From Schmidtea polychroa (taxonomy: Eukaryota): a DNA stretch of 64,000 nucleotides. The stretch covers positions 23,622,001 through 23,686,000 of the forward strand of contig CM097885.1 of assembly GCA_044892525.1 (NCBI GenBank), read 5' to 3'. The notes under the pieces are model-generated. The model was not told the DNA's origin. It was given only the letters and a program-made list of their open reading frames with translations, and made no database searches. The position numbers were made by a program, and so were the translations under genes. Of the stretch, positions 13,095 through 60,791 are shown one piece after another. The first letter of the stretch is position 1. Each line of letters opens with the position of its first letter.

Positions 13095-13290
13095 GTATCG
13101 ACTAATTGTATGAATCAGTTGTATCGATCAGTTCTATCGATTAATTTTATCAATCAGTTGTATCGATTAATTAAATCGATCAGTTGTATTGATTAATTGT
13201 ATCGATCAGTTGTATCGTTCAATACTATCGATTAATTGTATCGATCAGTTGTATCGATTAATTGTGTCGATTAATTGTGTCGATTAATTG
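13095..13290. repeat. 13-bp minisatellite (TGTATCGATCAGT / TGTATCGATTAAT variants), about 15 units
   Basis: Directly visible tandem units with an ATCGAT core. Confidence 0.9.
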
Positions 13291-14699: not shown

Positions 14700-15320
14700 T
14701 TAATCAATTGTATATTCTCCATCTTTCTCTTTCTGTTCTCATTCTTCACCGGTCAATTACTTTATTGATACCTGATTCGAAAAAACATTGAAGCAATAAA
14801 CAAGTCCATGTGGTTTTTTTTAATATCCGATTTTGTTTGATATTATTTTCGGTAAAGAAAATGTTACAAAAATCTATAAAGATGATAGTCGCTTGGTGTA
14901 ATGTCCGGAGAATACGTTGGAGGAAGAAGAATGTCCCAGGAAAATCCATTAAATATTTCTATTGTCTTTTTTGAGACATATGCGTAAGCGTTATCCTGGT
15001 GTAAAATTACCTTTCTTTGATTAACAAGCGCTGGTCTTTTATAAACCGACTATTTTTTAAATGATCCAGCTGAGCACAGTATATGTCTGTCTTAATTGTC
15101 TGCTTATAATCCAATAGTTCATAAAGGATCAGGCTCTTCATATTCCACCAAATGCATAACATTATCTTATTGGGATGTATTCCTGTTATTGGAGTAGGAA
15201 TTGGGGATTGGTTGGTGCTCAACCACTGAATCTTGCTTGCTGTATTGTAGTTAAGAATCCAATTCTCATCTCAACTCAAAAACAATTCATTATGTTCTCC
15301 ATTTATTAAAGATTGACAGA
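14700..15320 (-). pseudogene. mariner transposase remnant (C-terminal catalytic half)
   Basis: IHPNKIMLCIWWNMKSLILYELL resembles the mariner K(V/I)MLxxWW..GI.xYELL block, followed by DNA (HDNA-like) and YSPDITPSDYHL (YSPDLAPSD motif). Frameshifts and stops present. Confidence 0.85.
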
Positions 15321-21100: not shown

Positions 21101-21654
21101 TTACAGTTGATTTAATAAAGTAAATAGTTTGCGGCATTTTATATATCCGAGAATTTTAATATATCAAAGAAAACGACAAAATCTTTATTTAAAATATTAT
21201 TTATTTAATTTTCTGTAAAGTTATTTTAATTAATTATAAATCGAGGAGAAATATACACATTGTTGTTGACACACAAAAGACATGTAAATTCAAACACAAT
21301 GAAATATTATTAAACCTCACCAAATGAAGTTTTTTTTGGGTTGTTTGAATTAATCGGATGAAGTAACTGTTTTAGTGGAGAATAAGAAAATTCAAAATGG
21401 AGTCGGTGCTTTTGATATTTCTGTGAATATTGTTACATCTTTCCGTCATATCAATGTAATTCCTAAATTATTCATTATACTGTTTCATAGATTAACTTTT
21501 CTTAGTTGTTTTTATCCTATTTTACTTAATTTTTCTTTAGATTTTTGATAAAGCGAATGAAAATACAACAACTTCTATTAAATGACGAAAAAAAGGAATT
21601 AAGTTATTAAATTTATTAATTTCAGAAGCTAAATATTAATGAAATATTTGAAAT

Positions 21655-21674
21655 TAATAATAATATTATTATTA

Positions 21675-21733
<59 letters not shown>

Positions 21734-21755
21734 AATATTATTATTATTATTATTC
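21655..21755. repeat. (TTA)n microsatellite
   Basis: Visible trinucleotide run; explains the poly-Asn ORF 21629-21838. Confidence 0.95.
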
Positions 21756-23399
21756 AAATTAGTCACATTTTGAAATGACAAATTCTTAAAAATAATTGAT
21801 TCAGAACAACAACAAAAGTCAACTGATTTGGGGGACATCGAAATTAGAAAAAAAATCAGTGAAAACAGGAAATATTGTAATTGTAATTGAAATATTGAAT
21901 CGTTTAAGTGTTTTTATGTTGATGTTATTTTTTTCTAAATATCTGATGGAATGTTTGCCATGTAAATTACATTAACAAATGTAAAATGTTAGGTTGGCAT
22001 ATCTAATGATCAATATTTTTATAAACAAAATTAGCCTAAAAATAAACTTAATAATAATATTATAATTGAAATAAATGTTAAAATAAAAAAATCTACTAAA
22101 ACATTTATGTTTAATCGACAACATGACATTTTTATTTCAATGTTATGAAAAAACCAATTTTTCTTTATTGACTATTTCAAAAATACAATTGTTTAAATAA
22201 TGGTTTTAATTATTTCAGTTTCAAATTTTATATTAAACATTGATAGATTATAATTTGGAATGCTAATTCTCTCATTTAGTTATAAATAAAGTTTTGCATT
22301 TCGAAATAAAAATTGTTATTATTAAAATATTTTTTAACTGTTATATGGTAAAATTTAATTAATATGACGTAATTAAATCACCATATTAATTAAAATAAGA
22401 AAATAAGATCCAGGTGAAAATTTCAGTAAAATAAATCAGAAATTTTAACAGCACTCGAGTTAAAGTTCAAATAATAATATTATTTATTAAAATAATGAAT
22501 TTATTTTGAAGCATTTTTACTCTAATTTTACACGTATTTTTGTTGCGAGCCCTGTTGACATAAGGAAAAAGGGTAAATTACTAAATTGTCAGTTTAATTA
22601 ACCCAATAATTGTTGTAAGACAAGAGCTGTTAATTGCTAATTGTTCATTTCTCATTCTAAATCTTTCACATTAATTATTTTTTTCATTCGAATTTTGTGT
22701 AATTTTTCCAAGAAATTCAACATTAAAATTGGAAGTAATATTTGTATTTTGACATGATTCTTACATTTTGATTTTAATTTTATGGCCTAAACCGGTGATG
22801 AGCATATTTTATGTCATTTTTTTTAATTTAATTTCCAGTTCAAATATCTTATTTAAAATAAGTCTCTCAGTATTTACACTACGTGACTGACTTTGTATCT
22901 ACTCAAAGTCTAATTAAAAATTCTGATATTTTAAAGTATAGCCTGACAGAGTAAGTTTTTAACTTTGTTTGCTACCAAAATATTTTAGGTATTTATTCTT
23001 GCCTACCTTCCTACATTCATTTGAAATTCTTCAATTCTCATAAATTTCGAATTCATTTGTGAATAGCTCTTACACCTGTGAATGGCATTACATCAGTCTT
23101 ATTCATGTGTAATTCACTTGCGCATTACTCACACTTACATCACATTATCTATAACAGGCGCTAACATTTGTACTATATCTCATTCATTATTATGAATTTC
23201 ATTATGAATTCTTTTTCATCCGATTTCTGTTATAAATAACAAGGAAAATGCTATTAAGATTTTACAAGACAAATGTATTCTTCATCAACAGCGAACATGG
23301 ATCAATGGTCATCAGATGTATTTGTTACTTTTGAAGTGTCTATGTAGCCATAGAAAATGCAGACAATAAAAGCAACTCGAAAGCGTTATCAATGATCAA

Positions 23400-23890
23400 A
23401 CTATTGTTTATTTCATATATTGTTGGAGTAAGCAATTGACTACCGTTTATTTTTCAATATGAACCGGACATGCCATCGGCTGAAATAAGAAAATAGAAGA
23501 ATGTACATTAACAATTCTTCGCCAACCAATGCAATTGGAGGTGGATGAATCTTGTTTTATGAAACGTAAATATAACAGAGGAAGGGAACCGGAACAACAA
23601 TGGGTCGTTGGTGGAATGTGCAAAATGAAACCAAAGAACACTTCTTGATTTCTGTTGGTACTGTAACCAAGAAATTTTGATTTAATTTTAAAAGAAAACA
23701 TGAGCAATTATTTATATTTTTATTCAACTAGTCACTTATATGTTCAAAATATTTGTGATAATGATAAATCCTTAATTTCAGCAATAATTTCATTCAAAAT
23801 TGATTCTTATATTTTCAGAAAGTATTTTTTCACAAATTCTCCATCAGAAAATAGTTTAAATTTTTTTTGTAAAATATGGCTAGCTTTAAA
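23400..23890 (+). pseudogene. Merlin / IS1595-family (ISXO2-like) transposase remnant
   Basis: From ~23535: LEVDESCFMKRKYNRGREPEQQWVVGGMCK then (frameshift) ETKEHFLISV, matching the VEIDES..KRKYNRGR....WVFGG signature. Confidence 0.8.
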
Positions 23891-23899
23891 AGTATGATA

Positions 23900-24010
23900 A
23901 CCACTTTATGCTCATTGGATGCTCAACGTTGGTACTGTGGGCTTATCTTAGTGCACTATAATCTTCAACTATTCATGTGGGTTCGTGGACTACTGATAGA
24001 AGTTTTGGGT
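23900..24010 (-). repeat. Partial copy of the structured-terminus family (upstream domains only; tRNA-like domain missing)
   Basis: 16-nt exact match TCAACGTTGGTACTGT (23923-23938 = 32128-32143), plus collinear blocks ACCACTT, TAG..CACTATAAT and GGGTTC..GGACT..GATAGAAG shared with 32105-32235. Confidence 0.75.
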
Positions 24011-28549: not shown

Positions 28550-29082
28550 NNNNNNNNNNNNNNNNNNNNNNNNNNNNNNNNNNNNNNNNNNNNNNNNNNN
28601 NNNNNNNNNNNNNNNNNNNNNNNNNNNNNNNNNNNNNNNNNNNNNNNNNNNNNNNNNNNNNNNNNNNNNNNNNNNNNNNNNNNNNNNNNNNNNNNNNNNN
28701 NNNNNNNNNNNNNNNNNNNNNNNNNNNNNNNNNNNNNNNNNNNNNNNNNNNNNNNNNNNNNNNNNNNNNNNNNNNNNNNNNNNNNNNNNNNNNNNNNNNN
28801 NNNNNNNNNNNNNNNNNNNNNNNNTTTCGTTGGAGTCTTTTAATAAAAATACTAACAACCTATAAATAATGTTGCGTGCCCACTGCAACACTATTACACA
28901 ATAAAAAATATATTATAAAAATTCTTAAAGTTAACACGTGTGAAATAATCAAATTTTTATACATTTATACAAGCGTTTAACTGTTGTAAGAACCTTGAAA
29001 ACTATAACCAGTTTTCAATAATACGATATAAAACAATATAAAGACTATTTTTAAAAAAATATATAAAATCACAAATTAATCA

Positions 29083-30395
29083 GATAAAATCACATCGTCA
29101 ATATCGATGCCGATTTCACGAATGAAAATGTCATCATCTTATTCCTCATCAAAATCGGGGCTCAAGCCACCAAAAAGCGGGCCAATCTCTTCGAATATCT
29201 GCCCGACATTATCCGGATCCGAGTCGTCGTCAAAGTCAGGATTCAAGCCTACTTCAGAAAATATCTGACCGTCATCAGTTTCGTCAGATCCTAAATAATG
29301 CCCATATGCCAGACTATAATTAGACCCCACTCATAGTCTCTTGTTATCGTTGTTCGACAAGGCTATTTTACTGTTCTTAAAAGTAAAGAGCTTGTGGTTA
29401 CGCGTCCCTATTCTAGTTTGTGGCACCGTATATACTACGCTGTTGTTGTAGCAGTCTAAATACGACTGGTGCCCTATCTCAGTATTACCAAGTTGAACTC
29501 CCTTAGCCCTAAGTGTTGCCTTATCTCCTAACAAACTATAACACTTAGGGCGCAAGAAAACCCACTCCTTATAACCAAGCCCTTTACTTTCGTCCTTAAA
29601 TTTCCCTATCACAGAATTCAAACTCTTTGAATACAAAGGTTGAGCAGGATCATAATTGCTAGTATCTAGAAGATTATCACGAATCATTGCCGGCAAAAGA
29701 GTGTCAAGCTTACAGTGCTTTATCTCTAAGAAAAAGGAGTCGGTGTCGCCGGCAACGATATTTATATCACAGTTAAACTCTAAACGATATTTTGCCAATT
29801 CTATATACTGTACATTCTCAGTTTAGACAGGTCTAGCACAAATTGGCCAATGTAGCTAGGCCTGTCTAAACATATAGAATCCTTATTTAGATGTGCAGCA
29901 ATCAAGTCATCATCAATTTTGATTTATTTCTTGAAAGTCGGCTTTGAAGCATATACAATCATCTTTTCAGCTGAATTGCATAGCCTCAAATTCATCCGTT
30001 TTTTTAAGGTTTTCCACGGATTTCCCATACAGACTATTATTAAATAGTTTATATAAATCTCTGTGCAGCTCGCATGTAGAATTTGAGCGTAAATTAGTAT
30101 TGGTCATTATATAATCTTTAAAAATGGGTGCATGCTTAAATTTAATTGCCCTATGTACATTTTTAATAATAGCCTCTAATTCTATATACAACTTGAGAAG
30201 TCGCCAATGAAGAACATGGTTCTTCTTCGGCCAATGCGTGAGCATCAGCTTCTCAACTTTCGAATCTGGCGGGCACATCTTTTCCGGAGCAATGGAAAAT
30301 CATTCAAAAAATCATGCACACACTGAGGGATATCGATATCCACTTCCATAGTATACCCATATGGAAGATTTTCAATATCCTCATTCATACATTCA
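29083..30395 (-). pseudogene. Protein-primed family B DNA polymerase, 5'-truncated and frameshifted
   Basis: YKLFNNSLYGKSVEN (motif B), AGDTDSFFLE (motif C), EWVFLRPKCYS, LRAKGV, KIALSNNDNKR..SLAYGHY. Confidence 0.92.
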
Positions 30396-30488
30396 TTCAA
30401 AAAAATATATTTGAATATATTTTTCAAAATAATATTAATAATAATAATAATATTAATAATCAAAACAACAAAGGAAAGGATACATTTA

Positions 30489-30800
30489 TTAAACATCAAA
30501 TTTTTTATACAATAACCAAGCTAAACAATGTTGACCACATGTTTGGTTCAATGGATTTTGAAACAGTTTTATTATACACAATAGGCTTTCCCATTGTTTG
30601 TAGTTTTGATATCAACAAAGCAGGGTAATAAAAACCCATAGGATCGAACACGAATATATTACCAGGTTTCATATATATATAGCTATCAATGTCCAACACC
30701 AAGATTAGACGATTGAGTATTGACGATTATTGCTTGATTATTGCTCAAATATGGAATTTTATCAAAAGGAAAAACTCCAACAAATTCATTTCCCAATATC
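30489..30800 (-). pseudogene. Adenain-like (C5) cysteine protease
   Basis: FVGVFPFDKIP..IVNTQSSNLGVGH (catalytic His region), IFVFDPMG (Asp), and after a frameshift QNPLNQTCGQHCL (Gln/Cys). Confidence 0.85.
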
Positions 30801-32026: not shown

Positions 32027-32085
32027 TGGTGGGTTACAGGTATTTTCAAGGTTTCTACCTACTCCTGCTGTTTCCAGCGCAACCC
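32027..32085 (-). ncRNA. tRNA-like three-way junction with encoded 3' ACCA (copy 1)
   Basis: Minus strand: GGGTTGC-GCTG GAAA CAGC-AGGAGT-AGGTA(13 nt)TACCT-GTAACCC-ACCA. The G-U pair works only on this strand. Expression not shown. Confidence 0.6.
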
Positions 32086-32347
32086 AGGATACAATTTGTA
32101 ACGGACCACTTGATACCCGTTGAGTAATCAACGTTGGTACTGTATCAAGGGTTTGGGTACTAGCAAAAAGTGAGCATGCTTAGCATACTATAATTGTCTA
32201 GCACCCACTGGGGTTCACGGACTGCCGATAGAAGGCCTATGTCCGGTTTCTTTAGTCCCCGTCATGATAATCAACCTTATAGAAAAATCACAATGCCCAG
32301 ATATGAGTGTACCAGTAAAGATTTATTCATAACAACAAGATCGGAAC

Positions 32348-32818
32348 TCATAGGATTGTAGTCGGTTCTTTCGGTGCAGACTCTGACAAAGTAGCATGGA
32401 GGGTCAATTGGGCCTGACAGGCTTGGCGGATTCTCGCCCGCGCCGCTTTACCCGGCCGGATCTTCTTCTTCGAGATCTTTGATGCATATTCCTTCGGTTG
32501 GTGAAACAGTTCACTCATAGGTCGGATCTTGGAAATGACCTCTCGATCAAGGTCCTGTTGGTGTACCTTGACCTCCAGCTCTCTCACTCTCAGGCGGAGG
32601 GCCCGCAACTCAACTTGATCTTGGGCACTCTGGGGTTGCAATTGAGTGATGAGTTTCATCCGCTTCTTCATCTCTGCGGGCGGGAACCAGGTGCTCTCGA
32701 AATTACGGCAATGGGCCTTGATTCGTGTTAACTTGACCCGGTATTCTTCCACTTGTTGCGCCCGCTCTCTATCTGCTCGTATTTCTTCCAGGAGTTTCAA
32801 CACTAAAATAAATGACAT
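32348..32818 (-). CDS. Unknown coiled-coil/basic protein, 156 aa, ending ~260 bp before the tRNA-like terminus
   Basis: Intact ORF, visibly more GC-rich than its flanks. Heptad-like ELRALRLRVRELEVK and basic KKKIRPGKAARARIRQ. Homologous remnant at 24.1-24.45 kb. Confidence 0.6.
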   Translation of the reverse strand: MSFILVLKLLEEIRADRERAQQVEEYRVKLTRIKAHCRNFESTWFPPAEMKKRMKLITQLQPQSAQDQVELRALRLRVRELEVKVHQQDLDREVISKIRPMSELFHQPKEYASKISKKKIRPGKAARARIRQACQAQLTLHATLSESAPKEPTTIL

Positions 32819-33307
32819 TAGAAATTGTTACCTCAGCATTGAGTGACGCACGTTATTAATGCTAAATGAATGTCGTCCCTTCGTCACCGCTCCCCTCTGC
32901 GCACATCTAGACCTAGTTCTATGGATTTTACCAAAGTTTATGGGACGGGTCGTAATGGCCAACGCTACGGAAAATTATCGTCGGTGGTAAAAATGGCTCC
33001 CGTTTAAAGAAATCATTGAAGTCAAAACGATGCACACAATGGAATTAGTATTGATAATTAATACATAAATAAACAATTGAACCAAGAAAATTATCGTCAA
33101 TAATAACACTGGTTAAAGAAGATGATCAAAATAAAACGATATCAATAATGAGATTAGTATTAGTGACCAGAACAGAACTAAGCAGTTAGATCAACACGAA
33201 CTGCCAAGACATACAAGGTACTATAAAAACATTCATCATATTACATGATTCGCACTGTAAATTAGCAACAAAATCATTTCGGGCTGTACAATGTTTAATT
33301 ATGAGTC

Positions 33308-33790
33308 CTAATCTTTGCTCGTCCCAATCTCCTTGGTGAAACTGGTGCCTTTTCGTGGTCGTCCGCGTTTTCTTTGCCGATTCGGTCCACACGGGGAAGT
33401 TCTTGGGTACTCCAGCCCACGGCGAAGGGCCGCGGTGCGCCTAGGATGACACTGAGCTCGAGCGTACCCATCAACATCCTCGAGTTCGCCGGCCAGGGTT
33501 GCTGTTTCGAGCCTGTACAGTCGATCCACCGCTCTCTTCGCATCGTCGAAGGCGTCGATCAGAGCCAAGGACGTATGGTTGAGGTACGGCTCTACCTTCG
33601 GGGTCACTGGGACCACGTTCTGGTAGGTCCAATCATGGATCTTGTACCAGATCCATCTGGACCTCAGGCAGGTGAGTGCTTCCTCCCGGTCCAGTCTGGT
33701 GACCTCGTCTGCCTCCTCTTGGGTTGTTCCGAGGCTCGAGTCAGTTGATGAGGGACCGGCCTGTACATTTCTTGGTCTAGTGCTGGGCAT
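33308..33790 (-). CDS. Unknown 160-aa protein with an AT-hook-like KRGRPRK near the C-terminus
   Basis: GC-rich ORF, same strand as and upstream of 32348-32818. The true 3' frame is uncertain because overlapping ORFs exist. Confidence 0.5.
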   Translation of the reverse strand: MPSTRPRNVQAGPSSTDSSLGTTQEEADEVTRLDREEALTCLRSRWIWYKIHDWTYQNVVPVTPKVEPYLNHTSLALIDAFDDAKRAVDRLYRLETATLAGELEDVDGYARAQCHPRRTAALRRGLEYPRTSPCGPNRQRKRGRPRKGTSFTKEIGTSKD

Positions 33791-35229
33791 GTCTATAATG
33801 ATAAAATTTAATAGAAGTTTCGTTCACGCGCCCCAGTTTCGTCAACGAAGAACGCTTGGGTACGAGGTTAAATTTCGAACTCTAGCATTATTCCATCAAA
33901 CCGCTAAACGATTTTTCTGATTTAAAGTGGAACTCCCAACCCCTAGTTGGTTCGCGCATTAAATGGTTCGAATTACAGAAAGAAAATTTCTTTTAACTTA
34001 AGAATTTACAATTTACAAATTATTAAGTTTATTAAATTAACTATTTATAAGTTATAGATTACCAGGTCAAAGCTGAAGTATTTAAATTTAAAATTAATAA
34101 ATTTGGATCTCGAAAGAAAAATAGAGGGGAATAAGGTAAGAAAAAAAATAGACAGAATAAAAGTCGGATTTTTGTTTATATGTTTCACTTTAATTTTCTA
34201 CTATATTGAATATTAGTTATTTTTAAAATAATTTTGTAGTTTTCTCGCTACATTTAAATAAATTTTGCCATAATATTCTTCGTAGGAATTATGCTACGCA
34301 GACCCACTATGGGAGGGGCATTGCTATGGGTCTTAGGTTCGTATCTAGCCCCTAGCAATTCCTAACCTTAGTGGTAGTGAGTGGCTTCAGCTTCAGCATA
34401 GTTCGGGCAAGTATTTTCTTTTCTACCTTTGACATTTTTTAATTTCAGGAATTGAAATCTTGTTGGCGAATATATTTCGTCAAGGTTAACTGGATAATTT
34501 ATTTTCGTATCGTACCACTTTATGAGCTAGGTAGTAGGTAATTTTATGTGGAACTTTTAACAAAATAATCTATGGTTCGTAATATGATAATTATTAAATA
34601 CCTTTATTAATACTTTTACTTGCATTAAAGTAATCTATGGACTCGTATAGTTAAACATCATAAAACATTATTTATATATTATTTCTAGGCTATGATTTTT
34701 GACTTAGCTTAGGGAGTTTGATCCTATAAAACCCAAGAAATAAGGGGGATTCCCTGTCCTTCCTGTCGTGCATGGGTTGACTACTGGGGTAACCTGGGTT
34801 AGTTTCGCGTGGGTGTGACAGGTTTTGCCCGAAAAGCAGAGTTCCTATTGACAGAGTCGATAGTGATTGGCGCATTTAGGAGAGCGTATGCATCGCCCAT
34901 TTGGTCAGCCAGACTGAGTTCGTCGAGGGTATCCTTCGGTTTGTAGGGTTGTTGCTATTATTAGAAGTGGTTCTATTGGCTGATTCTTATCATGAGGAAA
35001 AATAAATCGATAAGGTGACTTTTGAATTTTCTATTTATAGTATCATTTTAATAAATCAATAAATTGGTTTAAATGAATTATAGAATTATTTGGTGGGCAA
35101 GGACGAGGTTTTGGGTTACGGGTTTCGTGGAGAACAAATATGGAGAGGATGCAAATACTTTATTCATGGTATCTTTGGTTCTATTAAATCAGCTAAATTA
35201 GATTAGTTATTTGAATGATAAAAAAGACT

Positions 35230-35750
35230 TCTAATCTTATAATACCGAAATAATCTTAAATCGGAATAATACAGCAAATTAGATTTATAATTTTTAATAT
35301 CTAAATGAAATCAACTGGTCACAATACAATAAAATGGGTTTATAATTTTGTGATATCTAGATAATATTAAAGGAGAATAATACCAGAAATGGATTTTTAA
35401 CTTTACAATTTTAAATGATAATAGTACAATGAAATGGATTTATCATCTTATGACACCTGAATATTATTATATGAGAATAGTACCATACGGGTTTATAACT
35501 TTATAATTTTAAATGATAATAGTACAATATGATAGATTTATCATTCTATAATATTAAACGATGATATTACGATAAAATAGGTTAATTATTGTATGATATC
35601 TAAATATTATTAAATGTGATTAACACCATGAAATGGGTCTCTAAATTTTTTAAGGTTAAATGATAATAATACGATAGAGTGGGTTTGTCGTTTTATGGTA
35701 TCTAAATAATATTAAGTGGTAATGATCCAACGAACTGGTTTTATCATCTC
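35230..35750. repeat. Degenerate tandem array of alternating ~55 and ~44 bp monomers
   Basis: Recurrent AATAGTACAATGAAATGGATTTAT-like heads with alternating tails (..ATATCTAAATA(A)TATTAA vs ..ATTTTAAATGAT). Confidence 0.7.
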
Positions 35751-39947: not shown

Positions 39948-41467
39948 CAGTAATACCTCGTACAACGCTCTATATACGTTCCCGGAAATTGATCGTAATA
40001 GAAAACAGCGCTATAGGAGGCAAGAAACTAAACTTTAGGGGTTACGGTACTTCTGTGTTAAATAAATACAATTTTTTTTATTTTTAATTCATTTTTAATC
40101 AATAAATTGAAGATACATACATTTAATTCAGTTCAATATATACTTAAAAATAGAAATATTCGATACTTCTTCAATAAATAATGGAGTGTAAATTATCGGG
40201 CACAGAATTTTCATTTTCTTTAAGAAGAATTTTATTCCAAACACCTCGAATGGAATCATTTGTAACTTCATTCCAGGAGTCTCTAATAGTTTCAATCACC
40301 ATCATGATATTGAAACATTACCAAAATTTAAAAATTGTTTCCTTTTGTACATCAACTGTATGTAAAAGTTGCTTGAATATACGCCGAGGGTAATAGGCTT
40401 TAAAATTCGCTATAACTCCTTGGTCCATCGGTTGAATCAAAGAAGTCGTATTCGGAGGTAAAAAAATAACTTCCACAGGTATGGTTTTTGAAAACGCAGC
40501 TATATTTTTTGAATGCATTGTCAATTATAAGAAGAGCTCTGGATTCCAGTTTCTTACTCTCGCAATAATCTTTTACTACCGGGCAGAAATATTTCACAAA
40601 CCATAGCTCAAAAAAAGCAGCCGTTACCCAAGCCCTTACGTTTGGATATCGAAATGACATTATCCTTGGAGTAACCCTTCATTGCCCGAGGATTTTCAGA
40701 CTGATACAGAACCAACAGTTTCAATTTAAAATCGCCTGAAGTTCCCACCTAATTAAAGGGGCAAGCCGATCTTTGGCCGCTTTAAATCCAGGAGATCGCT
40801 TCTCTTCTCGTCTACGTTGAATATTAATTCGGGGGGATATTTTTTCTCCGCTATCAACGATTTTAAAGATTTAGTAAAATCTTTCACGGAACCTACATCG
40901 ACGCTAGCGGCTTCTCCACATTTTTTTGTTTTGAATATTAGCACGAACCTTAAATTTCTCAAACCATCCTCGGATTGCTGCAAACGTTTCTACCGATGAG
41001 CTGGCAGAAGGGTCGTCAGAGTTTTGTTTCTATAACTCTTCAAATAAACCTCTTGCTTTCTCCATTATGACTGCTTGACTCAATGACATATCTCTATTAT
41101 TTTGGTCTTCTATCCAGTAAGTCAACACTTTTTACATTTTTTCAATCATTGTGTTACGCGTTCGAGAGGTTTTTGTAGCTGAAAGTGGTGTTGTTGATTG
41201 CACAGATCTTTTAATTTTCTCAGCATTTTGCATAATTGTTCTAACAGTTGATCCGGGTAAATTCAATTCACGGCATACATCTACTTGACGTTCCCCATTT
41301 TCTATTTTTCGAATTACTATCAATTTTATATCCATGGATAAATTTCTTCTCGAATTTTTTGTTAAATCTTTCACACTTTCTTTCCGTTCCGACATTATTG
41401 ATAATATATTATTTAGTTATTTACAAAAATAAATAGAAACATTTCAACGAGAAACACCGAGTAACTG
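39948..41467 (-). mobile_element. Tigger/pogo (TIGD1-like) DNA transposon, frameshifted transposase 41395 to ~40130
   Basis: HTH (LSMDIKLIVIRKIENGERQVDVCRELNLPGSTVRTI), [65 protein letters not shown] left end; right end uncertain. Confidence 0.88.
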
Positions 41468-41555
41468 TTTAATTTTTGTTTCTAAAAAAATTCAAATGAT
41501 TTATGTGAATCCCCAAAATATAAACAAAAATGTATGGAAATTTGAAATCAATTTT

Positions 41556-41558
<3 letters not shown>

Positions 41559-41608
<50 letters not shown>
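41559..41608. repeat. (TA)n microsatellite
   Basis: Visible run. Confidence 0.95.
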
Positions 41609-41610
<2 letters not shown>

Positions 41611-42479
41611 TAAACGTCTATTAAATATAATATACACGAAACTAATTTGATGCCAATTTCCCATTTATAATTTCTCATATTGGTAATATGGATGTAATTT
41701 TATAGTCCTGAATGTGAATTTACATATTCCATTTCACATATGGTTTAAATGGAATTTGTTTCTATTCGTCATATAATTTTGATGATGGTTCATCTGTGAA
41801 TGATCGGTTTTCATTAATTAAAAGCTGGTTGTTGACTCGTCCAAATATTGTAGTAATACATATAACAATTATCTCTTACCTTGGTCTGGCTGGGTAGCCA
41901 GAACCACGCTCTGCTAGCATATCGAAAACATTATGACCCAGAAGACTTTCTTTATTAACTTAAGAAATACTCGTTAAATTATATTCGATTGAGTTGATTA
42001 GTAAATGCATCTGATGTTCATGAAAACATAAATTGGTTTAAATAGCGACTGCTCCTTTTTAATATTTTTCATATTTAAAATTTGAAATAATGATAAATTT
42101 TATGTTTTATACACAGTCTGTTTTATATACACAAATTTTCATTTGATTTGTTCGTTCTATTTTATCAAATAACAAATAATTACTTACATATTGTATTAAC
42201 AAATATGGATTCATATTATATTAAGTAATAAAAATAAGCATTTATCTTGCTAAAATGATGTTTATTTTATGATTTCATTTTTAAAATGAATAAGTATATA
42301 ATTACAAAAGTTAATTGTTTAGTCTATCTGTTTAATTAAAAGAATAATCTTTAGTTACATATTTAAAAATTATTACCAAAACATTCTAGAATATTCTAGT
42401 TAATTAACTAGAATAATATATCTAGTATAACTAGTATAATAACGATAATTAACTAGCAACTGCTGATATTTTAATATTA

Positions 42480-43210: not shown

Positions 43211-43801
43211 CAGAAAATAGAAATATTTAACAAATAAATTATAGTTTAAACTTTTCCCAACCTTTCATCGATAATAGGCTTATCATATTTTCTCTTTTCG
43301 AACTTAAAATGGAAATTATATAAATGTGAATATTCATTTAAATCAATATTAAAGTAATAAATGAAAGAAATATATCAAATAAATAAATGAAAACATTTTA
43401 TGAAAATTTGTACCTTAATTGGATACTTGAACCATACAAAAAATATAAATTAAATCAGTGTTTTACGGAAGAAGACTGGATAATGAAATTTCATTCTTAT
43501 TGGTGACAGAAGTGACTATTAACGATTAAAATGAATGATATAAAATTTCAAATTACTTACATTGTGACTCCGAATCAGAGTCTAGTTCATCCCCAATATA
43601 AAATAGCAGTGGGGGCATCAACAATAATATTCCGATCATTGATTATTTGACATTCTTCATTCTTAATAGGAGCATCCCCAACACCAGTGGGGGCACCAAC
43701 AATAGTTTCGGATCATCGATTATTTGACAATCACCTGAAAATTTTATTAATTAATTATTTAAATAAAATAAATTTACTCGATGATAATTCCATAATAATA
43801 T

Positions 43802-43858
43802 TGGTGGGTTACAGGTAAGCAAACATTTTACCTTTTCATGCTGTTTCCAGCGTAACCC
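43802..43858 (-). ncRNA. tRNA-like three-way junction with encoded 3' ACCA (copy 2)
   Basis: Minus: GGGTTAC-GCTG GAAA CAGC-ATGAAA-AGGTAA(9 nt)TTACCT-GTAACCC-ACCA. Upstream hairpin CTTGATAC/GTATCAAG at 43882-43922. Confidence 0.6.
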
Positions 43859-44193
43859 AGAATACAAACAATGTCTTACCGCTTGATACCCATTGAGTGA
43901 TCAATGTTGGTGCTGTATCAAGTTGGTGAGTGTCCACAAAAAGCGACCGCATTACCTGTCCGATTCCTATTGGCTCCTATGACTAAACTGTTGCCCCAAA
44001 TTTAAAACACCTGTTTCGACCAGTCAGACGGGAGAATGACGTCTACCTCTGACTGGCAGTTATTGTTTTGGTTTTTGTCGCGTCTGTGTGCAAAATTGTT
44101 GTCAAATTGATGTGCGCGCACAGACGCGAAGAATTGAAAATTGATTTTGAGATTTTGCTGGAAGTTTGGTGTTGTTTTAAATGGAGAAAAAAA

Positions 44194-44292
44194 ATGGAAG
44201 GTGTCATTGAAATTAATATTCATCCAGTGGCTCTTTTCTCAATAACTGATGCATTTGAAAGAAGGTCTGACGTAAATTCTCGTGTCATTGGA
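44194..44292 (+). pseudogene. EIF3F: eIF3 subunit F N-terminal fragment (33 codons)
   Basis: MEGVIEINIHPVALFSITDAFERRSDVNSRVIG matches the eIF3f MPN start (LHPVILASIVDSYERR....RVIG). Similarity stops at RVIG, there is no GT donor there, and no downstream exon was recognised in the window. Confidence 0.75.
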
Positions 44293-44528
44293 AATGAATT
44301 GATATGTGATGATGATGTATATTCTTACAAATATAAAGTAGAAATTCAAAATATGTTCAATAACAAGTTTCGTTTATTTAATTTTCCCAAATCTGACAAT
44401 TTCAAAATGAAAAACTCTTGTACATTTTCTAGTATTATCCAAGATTTAGAAAATCTTAAAGAATCAGAGCCGTTATGCACGTATTCAAGAACATCACTAG
44501 TTACATTTATCACCGGAGACAAATCAGG

Positions 44529-45200
44529 TTAACAATAGTAATGATGGTGTAGTAGTAGGATGGAATCTAGTATTGATATTGAGTTGATATTGGGAGTATC
44601 AGTTGAAGTATCTGGAGATTCATCAAAGCATATAAGGTCAGCCGTATATAGCACATGTTCAGGTTCTTTCCTCCAGTCTGGACTAAGCATTAAGCCATTT
44701 GAACCATGAGACTCAAAGAAGTAAGGGCAGTTCCAGCAGGTCTTATTGAAAGTTTCAAGGTGATTGGATAATTTGGCCATGATCTTGTAGAATATCTTCA
44801 TATTTGGTTCCATATCTGGGTCTTCTTGGTTTTAGATAATGGTTAAATGGGAATGGTTTTGAAGTTTATGGAGTAAATGTTTAAAGATTGGCAAAGTTCC
44901 GATATGGATATGAGAGGGATTCTTAAGTTTCGTTCAGTGAGGCAGGATTTGAAAGATTTCTGGTGCTGGATTAGAATATCCTTTTACGCATTGTAGAATT
45001 CATCCACTGTCCGAGAGTCTTCATAAAATTTGAAGGTTGCTTTAACAGTTCGTAGCACCGATTTTAATAAATTTCATTTAAATAAAAATCTGCTCTGAGA
45101 AGACAGATTGGTCCTTTTAACGAGACTAGCTTCGGCGAGATGCCATAAACTTCTCCATCATCATTCTTTTATTGGACTTGCTCTAGTCCTGTATGCTCAC
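44529..45200 (-). pseudogene. Decayed unknown ORF upstream (minus sense) of terminus copy 2
   Basis: Long frames broken by few stops (LKSVLRTVKATFKFYEDSRTVDEFYNA*KDILIQ.., MEPNMKIFYKIMAKL..CWNCPYFFES). No family recognised. Confidence 0.35.
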
Positions 45201-45399
45201 AGGGCTGCTTCTGAAATATAATTTTGATCTTTTATTCTTTGTTATTGAATTCTTTGGCTCCGGTTACGATTTGATTTTTGTTATTCTTTATATTTGAGGT
45301 ACTGGGTGTTTTGTTAATTCAAATTACAACTATTATCAACAGGCAGATTTTATTATTGTGGACAGATGAAGACACAAACAAATAGACAGAATAATTAAA

Positions 45400-45770
45400 A
45401 ATCAACAATATTAATCAGCCATCACGATGTAAAAAGGTAAACATAGCCATCACAAGGCACAATAAAAATCATACTATCCATCCATAATATTGGAAAAAAC
45501 AAAACAATTAGTTATCACGATGCAAAAATAGGCTAATAACATGCTTAATAACAGTCATTACAAGGCGTAATTATAGTGAGTAATGAAACAGAACAAATAA
45601 AAATCACCGATATTAACCAGCCTTCACGATTTAAAAAGGTAAATATAGCCATCACAAGGCATAATAATAAAAATCATTATTAGGAAAAAACTACACTAGA
45701 TAGTCTAAACAGGCCAATAACAGGCCTAATAATAGCCATTACAAGGCGTAACTAAATAAATTGTAATGAG
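45400..45770. repeat. Degenerate ~195-bp tandem duplication with AGCCATCACAAGGC subrepeats
   Basis: AGCC(A/T)TCACGAT(G/T)TAAAAAGGTAAA(C/T)ATAGCCATCACAAGGCA occurs near 45417 and 45618. Confidence 0.75.
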
Positions 45771-46040
45771 TATAATAATATCAGTACTAACAACAGCAAT
45801 AATAAATAATAGTACAATAATAACAGTAATAATAATAGTGACAGTAGCAATAATAATAACAACAACAATACCAACAATAAAAAACAATAGTAGCAATAAT
45901 ACCAACAGTAGTAATAATAATAATAATAGTAGTGATAGTAAAGGTCATTACATGACGTAATAATATGTCATAATAATACTATTAAATTAATGCAATACAT
46001 TCATGTGGTAATTATAATAAGTAGCAATAAAATAAATATG
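45766..46040. repeat. (AAT/AAC/AGT)n low-complexity tract
   Basis: Visible trinucleotide mix. Confidence 0.8.
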
Positions 46041-50628: not shown

Positions 50629-52088
50629 ACACTTTCATTGGTTGGGTCGGTCTAGATTTTGCTGACTAGTGCCTGTGATAAGCACATCAGGAGTGGTAGG
50701 TGATAATCTCGCTTCGACACAACTGTGACATTTCAATTACTGATTCGGTTATTTAATTATCACCTTAGGTAGATCGATCTGTATGCATGTGTTAAATTTT
50801 CGCACTCGATGATAACGTGTAATCACCCTGCTGTTTGTTCTCGCAAAATTTTTGTTAGTCACAATTTATTTTATCTGTTATCTGTTATTCGCAACATGTG
50901 TTGAGCAGTGTAAGATTTATTATCACCTGGTGGGGTTTCGCTGCTGATAGATTTTAAACCTATTCTATCTTGGGAAAATCATTTGGATAAATATTTATTC
51001 TACTGAAATGGAATGTAGCTCATGTTCTATGTCGGCCTATGGCACTCCTAGTGTCGTATTATTGATTGCACTCGTCAGATGATCTGCAATTACTGGCCTA
51101 ATGATTTCTAATCAGTTATACTTACAGTCCTAATTCAAAGAGTTGGTCAGAGTTATTGTTTATGTTATTGCCGTGCTATTTCTACCTTCTTATTTGGATT
51201 TTCTGTGATAAGAGAGATTTGTCATATATTTCTACTGTGTTAGTTCTACTGAGTACAGGACGTTTTCTACCTTGGCTATATTATGATGATGGCCTACTGG
51301 TGAAAGATCTAAAAATTTCGACGCTGAACGCCTCAGTCACCGCTCTACTCATTGGAACATTATCTTTTGAAATTTTTACTAGCACCATCTGTGATGAAAG
51401 AAATGTATGATTTTTCTCTTGAAATCTGACTATCTCGTCTATTGGTGACGGGTCCGTGGAGAAACCTCCACATTTCGGCCCAATATCAACCACAGTGATT
51501 GAAAACACCAGCACACAGCATCCCGAAGTTACCTTGAACAAAAGTGTACTGGGCAACAACTCCACTGTTCTATATATTCCCAAGCATGAACATGATTAAT
51601 AAAAATATTCTACCAAATATATACTTGCTATTATCATTATTATATTTCATCAATTAATATCAATAATTAAGATTCATTACGAAAAATTACTTCTAAAGAT
51701 TCATTAAAAGAAATTCACTACATTAAATTGTATCGATTGATGAGAGAAAAGTGACTACAAAATGTTTAATTTAGCATTACAAGTTTACAAATTTATATTG
51801 ATATACATGAATTATACTAGTAAAGATAAGATTCAAAACATAAAAACTTACCGATATCTAAGTAGTGAACTATCGAAGCGATATAGTTGAATTTGCTTTC
51901 TCAGAAATAACTTGCGAATAAATAGACTAGAACTTGATTTAAACTGTTGAAGATTCCTGGACTGAATTTACAATAGTCTTCAATAATAATAAGGAGAAAC
52001 TTTTTTTTTACTAATGCGTTCAATTTCAGAAAGAAATTGTTCAACACAATTTAGACCGACTTAAACAATTTAGAATGACTTATAAAAT

Positions 52089-52141
52089 CTTACTCCTGTC
52101 ATATTATTAATGCACAGTAACCCGCAGAAACAACGCTTCCC
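52089..52141 (-). repeat. Degenerate partial copy of the structured terminus
   Basis: Minus strand GGGAAGCGTTGT-TTCTG is near-identical to 60719-60736 and is followed by GGGTTAC; the remainder is decayed. Confidence 0.45.
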
Positions 52142-52649
52142 ATATAAATTAATGTAAAATACGATAATTCGTTCCTTGCCGAAAAAAAATACTAAAAAAA
52201 ATTTATGTACATATACATTTATTGAATGAAAATTATATACATGATCATGTTGTTAAGGATGGTAAATCATCTTGATCTTTCTTTCTGTCGCGGAATAAAC
52301 CGACCTGTAATACGAATTCATTTTACAAAAATTAAAAAGTATTCGAAATGATAAGTTTGTTGTAATGATACATAACTAATTTTTTTTTACTAAAAAGCTT
52401 TCTAGTGACGTTTGTTTTTGGCGACGCTTCAAAATTTGGTGAAAAGGCAATACAGCATTATCATTAAATAAATTTGTAGCGCCGACAAATTTGGGAACCG
52501 ACATCGTTCACATTAATTTCTTCACTTATCTTATTCATAGTTCGTTAATAATCATCCACGTTTAGTACGACATTTCAACGAGAGTCTGATTTACGATCAG
52601 GTATAGGTGTAGGCTAGGAAGAATTTTTTTTCATTAAATCAAGTTTTCA

Positions 52650-52996
52650 TTTTTCATAACTACAATTCGTCATTTTCCCACGAAAATTCGTCGACGATAA
52701 TTTCTTCTCTCATCGCTCACCCCGTCAACACTGAAAAATCTGCTAATTCAATTCCAAAGAAACGTAAACGGCCGTCCCGAGTCGATCGAACAGCAAAACG
52801 AAGAGAAAAGATGGAGGCACTAGAGGCTTCGTTATTTGCTGCCCAATCAGCCATCACCAAGATCAATACCAATCCTCAGATAGCGGTACCACCTGATACC
52901 TACAGAATAATTTCATCGGCGACCGTAGCACTGACGAAAGATCCTCGGCTGCAGGTTGACATGGATGCCTTGCTGATCGAAGGCGATGCGATGTAG
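52650..52996 (+). CDS. Unknown basic/NLS-bearing ORF ending 80 bp before terminus copy 5
   Basis: Frame is open upstream of the listed ATG: ..IPKKRKRPSRVDRTAKRREKMEALEASLF... The basic motif resembles KKKIRPGKAARARIRQ of the 32.3 kb ORF. True start unknown. Confidence 0.45.
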
Positions 52997-53076
52997 TTAG
53001 ACGAATTCCGATTCATGAATGATTGACAACGTTTTTCACGTAACGGCTGTCGAATGGTATAGCAACATTGTATTCT

Positions 53077-53132
53077 GGGTTCCGTTGGAAACAACATGAA
53101 GGAATTAAATATAAATTTTCTGCAACCCTCCA
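53077..53132 (+). ncRNA. tRNA-like three-way junction with encoded 3' TCCA (copy 5, divergent)
   Basis: GGGTTCC-GTTG GAAA CAAC-ATGA-AGGAA..TTTCT-GCAACCC-TCCA. Compensatory C-G to T-A change in the GAAA hairpin. Confidence 0.6.
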
Positions 53133-57909: not shown

Positions 57910-57966
57910 TGGTGGGTTACAGGTAGTCAAACATCTTACCCTTTCGTGCTGTTTCCAGCGTAACCC
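57910..57966 (-). ncRNA. tRNA-like three-way junction with encoded 3' ACCA (copy 3)
   Basis: Minus: GGGTTAC-GCTG GAAA CAGC-ACGAAA-GGGTA(11 nt)TACCT-GTAACCC-ACCA. The terminal G-U pair is valid only on the minus strand. Confidence 0.6.
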
Positions 57967-58461
57967 AGAATACAATGATGATCCTATCAATTGATACCCG
58001 ATGAATGATTAAGTGGGTTTCTTACATACTCTTCTTCTCCGCCTGAGAGCATCATCAAATCAAGTTTCAACGGTTACACAACGAATATTAAGCCCTTGCG
58101 CGCATTCTAAATTCTAAATTATAGAATCGAAATCAAAACAATTTGAAGCAATGAAAACAAACTAATGCTGGATCAAAATTTTCTGTTGTTTGATGACTGA
58201 ATTTAATCTCAAAATTACCGCATCATGAATTCAAAATTATACAGAAATTAGAAATAAGCAATCCGAAGCTGAGATTTGGTGATTATTTTTCGGATTTCGA
58301 GTTTTTAAATAATGCATTGTTAACAACAGGTTATTATGTGTACACGTGAAATTCAGTTTTGCAGCGTACTAGCGCTATTCTTAGGCAATCCAATCTTGAT
58401 TGATAGCCGACAATAAATGTTGTCTTTCAACATTCATTTTCATTATACCTTAGACACACAA

Positions 58462-58464
<3 letters not shown>

Positions 58465-58502
<38 letters not shown>
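58465..58502. repeat. (TA)n microsatellite
   Basis: Visible run. Confidence 0.95.
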
Positions 58503-58506
<4 letters not shown>

Positions 58507-58572
58507 TTTGCTGACTTCATTAAGGTTTTTCATAATAATCCAATTATATTCCGATTGAGCCCCAAATTTCCG

Positions 58573-58602
58573 TGGTCGGTTGCAGGTAACCTACATTATA
58601 CC
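58573..58602 (-). repeat. Truncated terminus copy (last hairpin, 3' stem strand and ACCA only)
   Basis: Plus TGGTCGGTTGCAGGTAACCTACATTATACC aligns with TGGTGGGTTACAGGTAAGCAAACATTTTACC (43802-43832). Confidence 0.5.
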
Positions 58603-60735
58603 AAAATTTATTTTGAGGATTTTTGATTGTGAAATATTTTGTAAATATCCTATGCGTGATTTTCTTTCCACCTCCAGCTCTTAGTTGGGTTGTCTGTAAA
58701 AATTTACAAACTACGGTGCCTGTCCCTTCGATGCGGGCGTGTAGGTTGATGATTTTAATCTTTATAGTTGAATAACTTGGACTTGCATGTTTTGTGTTTG
58801 ATTTAAAAAATTAGACTTTAGTTTTTGTGACTTTTGAAAATTTTGGGAAAATATTGATTTCTGAAAATGTGGGAAAAATAATTTTGGGTGTTTTTAAAAT
58901 TTGGGGAATTTCGAGTTTGAAAAATTTGGGAAATTTATTTTTTAGACTTTTTAAATTTTAGGAAAATTTTGAATTGGGCAATTTATTTTAGGGATTTTTT
59001 GAGCTGGAATTATTTATTATCCTATGTGATTTTTTCTTGTAATTTGTTGATTTTTTCCAAGTATTTTTATATAAAAATTTCTAAGTCGAGTGGTGTGACC
59101 TTCATTTTAAAGTACTTTCATATTTAATAAAAAAGTTTTCTAAGTATTTTATTAAAGCTTTTGTTCATTGTCCCACCGTTTGTTGAAGAATATGATTTTA
59201 TTTCTATAATATAAGATTTTCTATGTTTGATAATATACGAATGATGTTATATTATGGCATTTGATGCTGATGTTATTCACTGTCTCGTCGTGTGTGAAGT
59301 ATATGATTTTAATTCTATAATATAAGACTGTTAGGATCATCATAATATATAGAAGTTGTTAAATTATGACGTAAATTTAGAGACTTTGGAGCTCATTTCC
59401 ATGGAAACTATACATTTTTTCTATATAAAGACTATATATTTTCGTGTCCGTTATAAAATTCTGTGTTGTCCTGGAATATCTTCAGGGGGTAGTGGTGTGG
59501 ATGGGACATATCCATCTACTTAAATGCATTTTTCAAAAAAATATTTTAATTTAACTTCAACACAAAGTATCAAATTATTTAGTTAACTTAATTGTATGAA
59601 AAATGATGTACTATAATTTCGATTCAGCTTATTGTCGACACTTCAATCTCGAATCCTAAGAAAATTAGCTGTGCAATATTATCAATAAATCAAATTCAAA
59701 CATGTCTAACGAAGTCACTGAAATCGAACTGGAACTGAACAAGTCGAATCAACTGAAGCAGTTACTGAAGAAGTTGAAGAATCATCAAATCGAGTCAAAA
59801 TCAATGGATCAAATATGCCAGAAAAGCAGGAAACAATAACCTTGAGCTTATTAACAATGATATCTCTGATGATGGTCAAGATCTTCAACAATGTTAATTA
59901 CAATAAATTCTTTCTTCAAATTAATTGTATGTATGTAAGGGAATATGTAAGAATAATCTATATTTTTTTAATTTGCAATTTGCTTTATTGAAATTAGTCC
60001 GGTAAATTTATTTTTGGTTCATTAAAATGCAAGATTTATTTACTTTATCTGATAGCAGTTTGCAATAACTTATCGATAGCATGTATTGAATTCGATCTAT
60101 AGTTTATGCTGTGGTTCATCGTTATGGTAGATAGTTGCTACAGCAATTAAAATTCTAACAACTAGTGTGGAACTATTTTTATTAGGCAATTTTACGAATA
60201 GACTTTACAATTTATAAATAGGATTATTGTATACTGTCAATAAAGTAATTTATTTTATTGAAAAAGGCAAACGTAATTAACAAAACCTTTAAGCTTGATT
60301 ATAATTTGCAGCTAAACATGAAACAATATAGATGAGAACTCTAATGAAATTGTTAGGTCTGTATAACTTATTAGTTTGAAATATTTAGTTGACGATGATA
60401 TCCCAAATTTAGTTTGAAAGGTGAAACGATAGATTTTTATTCACAAGTCGATTAAAATTTCGATAAATAAACTATTTTTGTGTATAATAAAATTTAACTG
60501 ACTAATGTAGATCTAATTTTCTTTCCATTCCTATGTTTTCCATTGAATGTCTAGCAAAGTAAAGACCATGAACCAAATTGGAGATATTTTCTTTATCAAT
60601 AGACCGTGGACCTGAGAATTTTAACTAATTATGGTTCTCAGGAGCGGGCTTGCTTTTTAATAAAATTCATCTATTCGGCACATTACCAACTTTGTCTATT
60701 CAACAGTGTCGGGTGATAGGGAAGCGTTGTATTCT

Positions 60736-60791
60736 GTGATAAGCTGGAAACAGCATGAAAGAGTATAATTTTAGTTACCTGTAACCCAGCA
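60736..60791 (+). ncRNA. Decayed tRNA-like three-way junction (copy 4; ends AGCA)
   Basis: GTGATAA-GCTG GAAA CAGC-ATGAAA-GAGTA..TACCT-GTAACCC-AGCA. Upstream hairpin TCGGCAC/GTGTCGG at 60675-60712. Confidence 0.5.

Follow-up and report, generated by a model that had tools for sequence, protein, structure and literature searches.

A dispersed repeat family with a CCA-terminated three-way junction in Schmidtea polychroa: a candidate tail-dependent retroposon

A 64-kb window of the Schmidtea polychroa genome (GenBank assembly GCA_044892525.1, contig CM097885.1, positions 23,622,001 to 23,686,000; "the window" below means this whole stretch) carries a dispersed repeat family whose members have only their last 105-150 nt in common, a structured tail that closes with a small three-way junction and an encoded CCA. 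Copies are named here by position in kilobases (32, 44, 53, 58 and 60.7 kb, with a relic at 24 kb). Their similarity stops exactly at the CCA, the tail varies in ways that preserve its base pairs, 10-bp direct repeats flank three of the five full tails, open reading frames (ORFs) accompany the tail on its own strand, and one ORF bears the mark of selection. The evidence is best read as a tail-dependent retroposon, unusual for its CCA-terminated three-way junction, in which the conserved stretch may be the cis-acting 3'-terminal RNA module of a non-autonomous family; judged from the sequence, this module reading is plausible and tentatively held, a little short of probable. An earlier note, made from the letters alone, had described a mobile-element family with a selected RNA 3'-end signal. 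The analysis supports that description as far as a dispersed, insertion-like family in which a structured same-strand 3' end alone is conserved and 10-bp repeats resembling target-site duplications occur.

The dispersed repeat family is real. A search for the 19-nt junction core, allowing up to three mismatches, finds five sites in the window and none in shuffled sequence, and a second core pattern returns the identical five sites, again with none in shuffles. Two covariance models were built, R1 covering leader and junction and R2 covering upstream hairpin and junction; R1 scores 78-94 bits at the five sites and at most 13.5 bits everywhere else in the window. Five junction copies of 56-59 nt, with NCCA at the end and at the positions first described, are thereby borne out, and so is the claim that homology ends at or near the CCA. 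The shared tail contains a T5 tract, a long hairpin, the leader TTGTATTCT and the junction, with similarity spanning about 105 nt in the 58-kb copy. Tails are 72-85% identical pairwise, and the 64 kb hold at least six copies. Three further partial copies had been proposed, with uneven results. The one at 23.9 kb is a relative of the 3' untranslated region (3' UTR) of the 32-kb copy (colinear BLAST match at 24002-23900) but has no junction; some 70 nt upstream of it, a stop-free stretch of 93 codons comes to an end. The one at 58.6 kb comes down to a short match found by reading, which neither covariance model reports to E 10, and no search supports the one at 52.1 kb. A 20-nt core searched in metagenome, IMG/VR and prokaryotic genome DNA collections matched no viral contig and gave only five hits, all of them chance matches within GC-rich genes of bacteria.

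The fold itself had been claimed for all five copies and holds in three. At 32, 44 and 58 kb, the minimum-free-energy structure is the described three-way junction on the CCA strand, with z-scores of -2.8 to -3.1, and the complements of these junctions fold less well. The 53-kb junction folds weakly and has one C-C mismatch, and the 60.7-kb junction has three of its seven closing pairs broken and does not form the described fold. The junction has just two arms, a hairpin capped by the GAAA tetraloop and a second one whose loop varies from 9 to 13 nt. The 7-bp closing stem adjoins a hairpin of 5-6 bp, which if stacked would give 7+5 or 7+6 bp, and A-CCA follows in three copies. In four of the five copies, the T preceding the stem can pair with the putative discriminator A, which RNAalifold draws as an eighth closing pair, so the stem may be 8 bp long with the CCA alone overhanging, and the name "discriminator" is uncertain. 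A hammerhead or other ribozyme core was ruled out by eye, from junction strands of 0, 4 and 0 nt, and by the lack of an Rfam match. Upstream, the conserved hairpin and T5 tract of the earlier description are partly kept. The T5 tract is present in three of the five copies; the hairpin is intact at 32, 44 and 60.7 kb, shifted in register at 53 kb and without its 5' arm at 58 kb. The nearly invariant leader TTGTATTCT, identical in four copies and changed once in the fifth, could form a competing helix with the 3' arm of the upstream hairpin.

Pair conservation was counted over a 155-column alignment of the tails with five helices, namely the two-part upstream hairpin and the three junction helices. 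Standard pairs occupy 86.9% of cells, compared with 35-41% when partners are slid by 1-3 columns. Both sides have changed in 7 of the 29 pairs, and just 1-8 of 500 shuffles reach the observed values. The clearest compensation lies in the upstream hairpin, where the 60.7-kb copy has two C-G pairs in place of U-A pairs. These structure-preserving changes favour selection on a fold, as suggestive evidence rather than proof. Strand assignment had been argued from G-U wobbles together with the GNRA loop. The wobble half is weak, since nine G-U cells against four A-C cells is not a significant asymmetry, and the stems of the three intact copies are almost purely Watson-Crick. As for the loop, the invariant GAAA and the A-N-G-A linker are RNA motifs solely when read on the CCA strand. 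Loop and linker, along with the ORFs and the better fold, all favour the CCA strand as the RNA.

Element bounds come from a search in which the bases after each CCA were sought upstream as exact 10-mers. Exact 10-bp direct repeats flank three of the five copies, starting 0 nt (58 kb), 0 nt (44 kb) and 1 nt (53 kb) after the CCA, with upstream partners 1995, 1980 and 1932 nt away, respectively; the units that they bound are listed in Table 1. The repeats measure exactly 10 bp, with 11 possible at 53 kb, and the low-complexity repeat of the 44-kb copy, ATATTATTAT, is the weakest of the three. In a random-site simulation on the same window, distances agreeing to within 70 nt arise at two or more of five sites with P = 0.003 and at three or more in 0 of 20,000 trials (P < 5e-5). 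A general 2-kb periodicity of 10-mers is absent from the window. On this sequence evidence, the 10-bp repeats quite probably bound units of about 2 kb. For the 32-kb copy, a length of about 1.97 kb follows from the GC step upstream of ORF1, and the 60.7-kb copy can extend at most about 0.9 kb before meeting the 58-kb unit.

The putative 5' ends of the units begin AC, AC and AG and have no shared sequence. Terminal inverted repeats are absent, and the complement of the 3' end is found nowhere but at the known copies. Unshared 5' ends without terminal inverted repeats fit retroposition over cut-and-paste movement, and a Mutator-like or other cut-and-paste transposon was rejected on the same two points, a duplication length of 9-11 bp being the only feature that fits. 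No paired direct repeats of the long terminal repeat (LTR) kind surround any copy, and an LTR retrotransposon, a solo LTR or a terminal-repeat retrotransposon in miniature (TRIM) was rejected for that reason and because the duplications are 10 bp rather than 4-6 bp. A search for empty-site paralogues, with the flanks searched separately, returned one 22-nt AT-rich match only.

Outside the tail, no alignment of the bodies was obtained with BLASTN, TBLASTX, global alignment (judged against block-shuffled controls) or diagonal enrichment; global alignment gives z 2.5-2.9 for three pairs, unsupported by any diagonal excess. A separate repeat family, present as an inverted pair at 41533-41640 and 58433-58534 with 77-78% identity, has one copy inside the 58-kb unit, so the body of that unit may be composite. 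Near its putative 5' end (45386-45670), the 44-kb copy has two internal direct repeats of 83 nt, 202 nt apart. The inter-ORF spacer of the 32-kb copy has a GC fraction of 0.32 and a self-match of 33161-33086 with 33052-32970, the trace of its tandem duplication. The internal repeats of both copies could be promoter-like monomers. The motif CGACGATAATTTTC occurs twice in this spacer region and a third time at 52692-52705, about 110 nt ahead of the start of the 53-kb ORF.

The tail is associated with coding potential on its own strand. A stop-free stretch of at least 75 codons that ends no more than 330 nt from the CCA is found at four of six copies, compared with 18.5% of random positions (binomial P about 0.013, computed by hand), in agreement with the earlier observation that the 32-, 44-, 53- and 24-kb copies follow same-strand ORFs. 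The 32-kb copy is compositionally foreign or very young. Its GC content is 45-58% and drops to 26% upstream of about 33,990; its ORFs have 51-58% GC and a third-position GC fraction (GC3) of 0.57-0.62, compared with 0.21-0.37 in host-like ORFs. The ORF stretch at 53 kb is likewise about 50% GC.

The first ORF of the 32-kb copy, ORF1, has a GC3 of 0.62 and a basic, AT-hook-like C-terminus. It has no relatives in 5.8 billion clustered proteins, in 1.84 billion representatives searched with full HMMER, or in PDB, Pfam, PHROGs and NCBIfam, and its single-sequence AlphaFold model is unusable (predicted local distance difference test score 52). ORF2 is coiled-coil-like with a basic C-terminus. Two near-identical metagenome relatives share 81% amino-acid identity with it, on ENA contigs of 549 and 638 nt that end before the tail. 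Against these relatives, the ratio of nonsynonymous to synonymous substitution rates (dN/dS) is 0.19-0.21 at dS about 0.5, with an in-frame indel; the start codon is kept, and 150 nt upstream are also conserved. From the two metagenomic relatives and the dN/dS of about 0.2, ORF2 is a live gene under purifying selection. Splice joining of ORF1 to ORF2 was considered and set aside, with no predicted intron and with the ORF2 start codon conserved in the relatives. Neither ORF resembles a reverse transcriptase (RT), integrase, nuclease or capsid protein, and neither has viral relatives in IMG/VR, PHROGs or Pfam.

As a tail-dependent retroposon, the family would work as follows. An RNA of about 2 kb would be transcribed on the ORF strand, and its 3' end would fold into the long hairpin and the compact three-way junction ending in CCA. 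An RT encoded elsewhere in the genome and supplied in trans would recognise this fold and begin cDNA synthesis at the last bases, at a nicked target. Such a start would leave every copy ending at the CCA and flanked by a target-site duplication of about 10 bp. Because only the tail would be needed in cis, it could be joined to unrelated bodies carrying small ORFs. The precise 3' junction, the flanking direct repeats, the unconserved 5' ends without inverted repeats and the compensated fold on the ORF strand are compatible with target-primed copying. "Stringent" pairs of long and short interspersed elements (LINEs and SINEs) and R2 elements owe their recognition to structured 3' ends, and they terminate precisely without poly(A); here, too, a structured 3' end is common to otherwise different elements and comes with a precise 3' junction. 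At the level of sequence, RT recognition, RNase P punctuation and self-priming would look alike.

Several observations weigh against this reading. The covariation rests on five sequences, and the wobble asymmetry of nine against four is not significant, so a hairpin acting at the DNA level still has to be considered. The direct-repeat test was designed post hoc, after the data had been seen, so the bounds are rated no higher than quite probable. Candidate target-site duplications, which the earlier note had proposed to look for, flank three of five copies; the direct-repeat search found none for the 60.7-kb copy or for the 32-kb copy, the youngest-looking member. A single duplication length of 10 bp, combined with a near-constant unit length and unalignable bodies, is atypical of LINE-driven insertion and is not explained by this reading. 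All recognisable mobile-element genes in the window are of DNA-transposon types (mariner, pogo, piggyBac, hAT and a Polinton-type polymerase). The autonomous members with RT or integrase that the earlier note had envisaged did not appear, as none of the roughly 60 window ORFs scanned encodes an RT, integrase or endonuclease.

The closest known systems are the structured 3' tails of stringent LINE/SINE pairs and R2-type non-LTR elements, which are reviewed in PMC3747384 and PMC5135761. As in those systems, the folded 3' end is the sole shared part, the terminal base is precise and terminal inverted repeats are absent; the flanking 10-bp repeats may correspond to their target-site duplications. 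Unlike them, the present family has no RT-bearing partner in the window and no 3' microsatellite or poly(A), and it ends in a CCA-terminated three-way junction rather than a single stem-loop. It also differs in its one duplication length (10 bp) and in its near-constant units with small ORFs.

True tRNA mimicry is the first alternative, and it would either refine the retroposon reading or stand alone. According to it, the 7-bp stem on a 5-bp hairpin imitates the acceptor/T minihelix of a tRNA; tRNA enzymes (3' trimming, CCA addition and possibly RNase P) would define or repair the end, and RT would start at the CCA, much as in a Mauriceville retroplasmid or at a viral tRNA-like end. This idea is rather unlikely. 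Its attraction lies in the 12-13 base pairs that the 7-bp stem and 5-6-bp hairpin would form if stacked, in the 3' A-CCA of three copies, in an encoded CCA that sits exactly at the similarity boundary, a pattern expected from copying a CCA-tailed RNA, and in an exact 3' end that is independent of downstream sequence. The tRNA likeness described in the earlier note is based only on a 7-bp stem, an abutting 5-bp hairpin and NCCA. ARAGORN finds no tRNA gene in the window, and Rfam searches to E 10 on three tails give no tRNA, mascRNA-menRNA, viral tRNA-like or ribozyme match. Reading the five copies reveals neither a T-loop motif nor a D-loop nor an anticodon arm. The base preceding the stem can pair with the "discriminator" to make an 8-bp stem, and the near-invariance of the leader is not required by tRNA processing. 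No U-rich/A-rich triple-helix arrangement of the MALAT1 type is seen upstream of the fold, where there is a lone T5 tract in three of the five copies and no A-rich tract. At gathering score and at E up to 10 alike, nothing in Rfam 15 matches the family, and "not described" holds for Rfam only; a literature search on motif strings and on tRNA-like ends in retrotransposons found no description of the element. By analogy, one may picture chromosomal retroposons in which a minimal tRNA mimic (acceptor-like stem, T-like hairpin and CCA) defines and protects the RNA 3' end, host tRNA 3'-end enzymes trim and re-tail it, and RT starts at the CCA; this specific version is unlikely.

Comparison with known tRNA-like ends sharpens the picture. 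The Mauriceville and Varkud retroplasmids of Neurospora are small circular mitochondrial plasmids with their own RT. They resemble the present family in having a tRNA-like RNA 3' end with a terminal CCA, which is the RT start site in the retroplasmids; here, in contrast, the copies are chromosomal, lie among nuclear-type transposons, are bounded by direct repeats and come with no RT found. A Mauriceville-type retroplasmid was rejected on these grounds: no RT domain in the scanned ORFs, and a setting of nuclear-type transposons and a tetraspanin-like gene without tRNA or rRNA genes. The MALAT1/NEAT1 mascRNA (RF01684) likewise closes a long transcript with a tRNA-like 3' fold and could define an end through tRNA enzymes. 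However, mascRNA is a cloverleaf with a U-rich/A-rich triple helix upstream, and its CCA is added rather than encoded; the present tails show none of these features and match nothing in Rfam. Plus-strand viruses (tymo-, bromo- and tobamo-like viruses and insect tetraviruses) also place a common CCA-ending 3' tRNA-like structure on unrelated segment bodies. Viral ones have pseudoknotted acceptor arms, mimic whole tRNAs and belong to RNA genomes, whereas these are old DNA repeats that match nothing in Rfam and carry no viral gene. Among published non-autonomous retroelements with a tRNA-like sequence, the nearest is the Helenus TRIM (PMC10886601), which has a tRNA-derived sequence within two LTRs, a primer-binding site, a polypurine tract and 4-5-bp duplications. 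The likeness is that a tRNA-like sequence is dispersed by a non-autonomous retroelement; the present family differs in every structural respect, with no LTRs, no tRNA homology and 10-bp duplications.

A second alternative is improbable: the tail could be the DNA-level terminal structure of a rolling-circle (Helitron-like) or other one-ended DNA transposon, with single-stranded DNA hairpins as the termination or recognition signal and the bodies as captured DNA. The near-pure Watson-Crick stems of the three intact copies would also form in DNA, the bodies are unrelated and have just one conserved end, and the identifiable neighbours are all DNA transposons with no RT seen. The fixed 10-bp duplication suggests a transposase-type staggered cut, and Mutator-like elements make 9-11-bp duplications. 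Against this, terminal inverted repeats are missing and the 3'-end complement is absent from the 5' ends; RNA is indicated by the better folding of the CCA strand, its GNRA loop and its G-U pairs, and the ORFs lie on the same strand as the fold. Helitrons are similar in having a subterminal hairpin at one conserved end and a captured, unrelated interior, but they start with TC, end in CTRR, insert between A and T and make no duplication; these copies end in ...CCCACCA, start with AC, AC or AG and have 10-bp repeats.

Another alternative, in which the tail is either a short SINE-like element in its own right or a conserved regulatory module from the 3' UTRs of host genes and the 2-kb units are coincidental, is quite improbable. 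The shared part is indeed just 105-150 nt with an abrupt start of similarity, and a canonical AATAAA in the 32-kb copy lies 21 nt past the ORF2 stop, about 150 nt upstream of the tail. However, SINE-like target duplications 60-500 nt upstream are absent, 10-bp repeats at about 1.95 kb are improbable by chance, and the tail is associated with ORFs. Several multipartite plus-strand RNA viruses have segments that share a 3' tRNA-like end, and a very improbable last alternative treats the copies as integrated DNA of RNA-replicon segments or satellites (virus- or plasmid-like) of about 2 kb with different genes and a common 3' replication signal ending in CCA; the similar unit lengths (1.92-1.99 kb), the shared end on unrelated bodies and the orphan ORFs with a GC3 foreign to the host region would suit it, but at least six copies in 64 kb with tails that have diverged to 72-85% identity form the genomic-repeat pattern of repeated old insertions, no polymerase or capsid gene, IMG/VR match or viral tRNA-like Rfam family is found, and the AT-hook-like motif of ORF1 is typical of nuclear DNA-binding proteins.

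The surroundings of the family are those of a chromosome. The window is nuclear-type DNA of an AT-rich eukaryote, with a mean GC of about 27% and, at Rfam gathering score over its whole length, no match and no tRNA or rRNA genes. Repeat-induced point mutation (RIP) was ruled out as the source of the AT-richness, since TpA/ApT is 0.83 and observed/expected CpG is 0.99, with no RIP signature and no CpG depletion. The recognisable genes are DNA-transposon remnants and one intact tetraspanin-like ORF (Table 1). The only public relative found for the latter is metagenomic and 36% identical, so the host lineage is poorly sampled. The Polinton/Maverick-type polymerase remnant shares the strand of the 32-kb copy and lies directly downstream of it; polymerase motifs occur in at least two ORF pieces, which implies at least one interruption, and the N-terminal part is not recognisable. 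The piggyBac-like transposase has at least two breaks, and direct repeats at 54198-54767 stand immediately upstream of the hAT-like gene. Elsewhere, the window has a 13-nt tandem array of about 19 units (13069-13315), six tandem repeats of about 100 nt each (35188-35723) and long (ATT)n microsatellites (21634-21762, recurring at 30.4 and 45.9 kb). Runs of N interrupt the window six times, over 212-370 nt in each case, at 358-620, 1314-1570, 7273-7515, 10694-11063, 19312-19523 and 28550-28824, and several long program-listed "ORFs" are artefacts of read-through across them.

Table 1. Features of the repeat family and of its surroundings (positions in the window)
Feature	Position	Strand	Remarks
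32-kb copy	32027..33995	-	sole GC-rich, intact-looking member; bounded by GC step and tail match; 5' bound approximate; no duplication found
ORF1 of the 32-kb copy, 160 aa	33308..33790	-	orphan
AT-rich inter-ORF spacer of the 32-kb copy	32963..33307	-	with the start of the following segment, holds a ~110-nt tandem duplication, 32970-33161
ORF2 of the 32-kb copy, 156 aa	32348..32818	-	under purifying selection
Tail of the 32-kb copy	32027..32176	-	T5 tract 32164-32170; long hairpin 32109-32149; leader; junction 32027-32085, ending ACCA
44-kb copy, 1970 nt	43802..45771	-	ATATTATTAT at 43792-43801 and 45772-45781; fold z -3.1
Tail parts of the 44-kb copy	junction 43802-43858; hairpin 43882-43922; T5 tract 43937-43943	-	
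58-kb copy, 1985 nt	57910..59894	-	ATTGTAATTA at 57900-57909 and 59895-59904; junction 57910-57966; fold z -2.8
53-kb copy, 1922 nt	51211..53132	+	TTCTGTGATA at 51201-51210 and 53134-53143, one base past the CCA; fold z -0.2
Parts of the 53-kb copy	junction 53077-53132	+	junction decayed; 127-codon stop-free stretch ends immediately before the tail
60.7-kb copy, tail only	60642..60791	+	broken closing stem; ends AGCA; upstream hairpin kept by compensating changes; no direct repeat
24-kb relic	23877..24002	-	colinear with 3' UTR and upstream hairpin of the 32-kb copy; without junction; tail model E 0.11
Possible relic of the last 17 nt of the tail, in the body of the 58-kb copy	58573..58589	-	15/17 match; reported by neither covariance model
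19-nt core sites	32067-32085; 43840-43858; 57948-57966; 53077-53095; 60736-60754	-; -; -; +; +	search with up to 3 mismatches
Protein-primed B-family DNA polymerase remnant, Polinton/Maverick kind	29139-30726	-	Pfam DNA_pol_B_2, E 1.8e-8
piggyBac-like transposase	48049-49617	-	DDE_Tnp_1_7; three ORF pieces, jointly most of the profile
hAT-like gene	54808-57241	+	DUF4371 and hAT dimerisation domain; several ORF pieces
pogo-like remnant	40400-41395	-	CENP-B N-terminal domain and DDE_1
mariner-like transposase fragment	15010-15270	-	Transposase_1
Tetraspanin-like ORF, intact, 330 aa	61049-62041	+	Pfam E 8.9e-7, below gathering score

These findings also provide a practical tool. The R1 and R2 models allow annotation of a repeat family that standard RNA libraries miss and that, without them, would be labelled "unknown" in this genome. 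If the tail is a signal for RT recognition or end definition, a compact three-way junction would offer a route to a precise 3' end without poly(A), and such modules could pass from one small-gene-bearing RNA to another, unrelated one. Real tRNA mimicry would tie chromosomal retroposons to both retroplasmids and viral tRNA-like ends, a connection that, to our knowledge, has been proposed theoretically and not seen in nuclear elements. In a retroposon with a true tRNA mimic, the mitochondrial retroplasmid mechanism and the "genomic tag" idea would find their nuclear counterpart, and the tail would be a portable module able to mobilise any RNA of about 2 kb.

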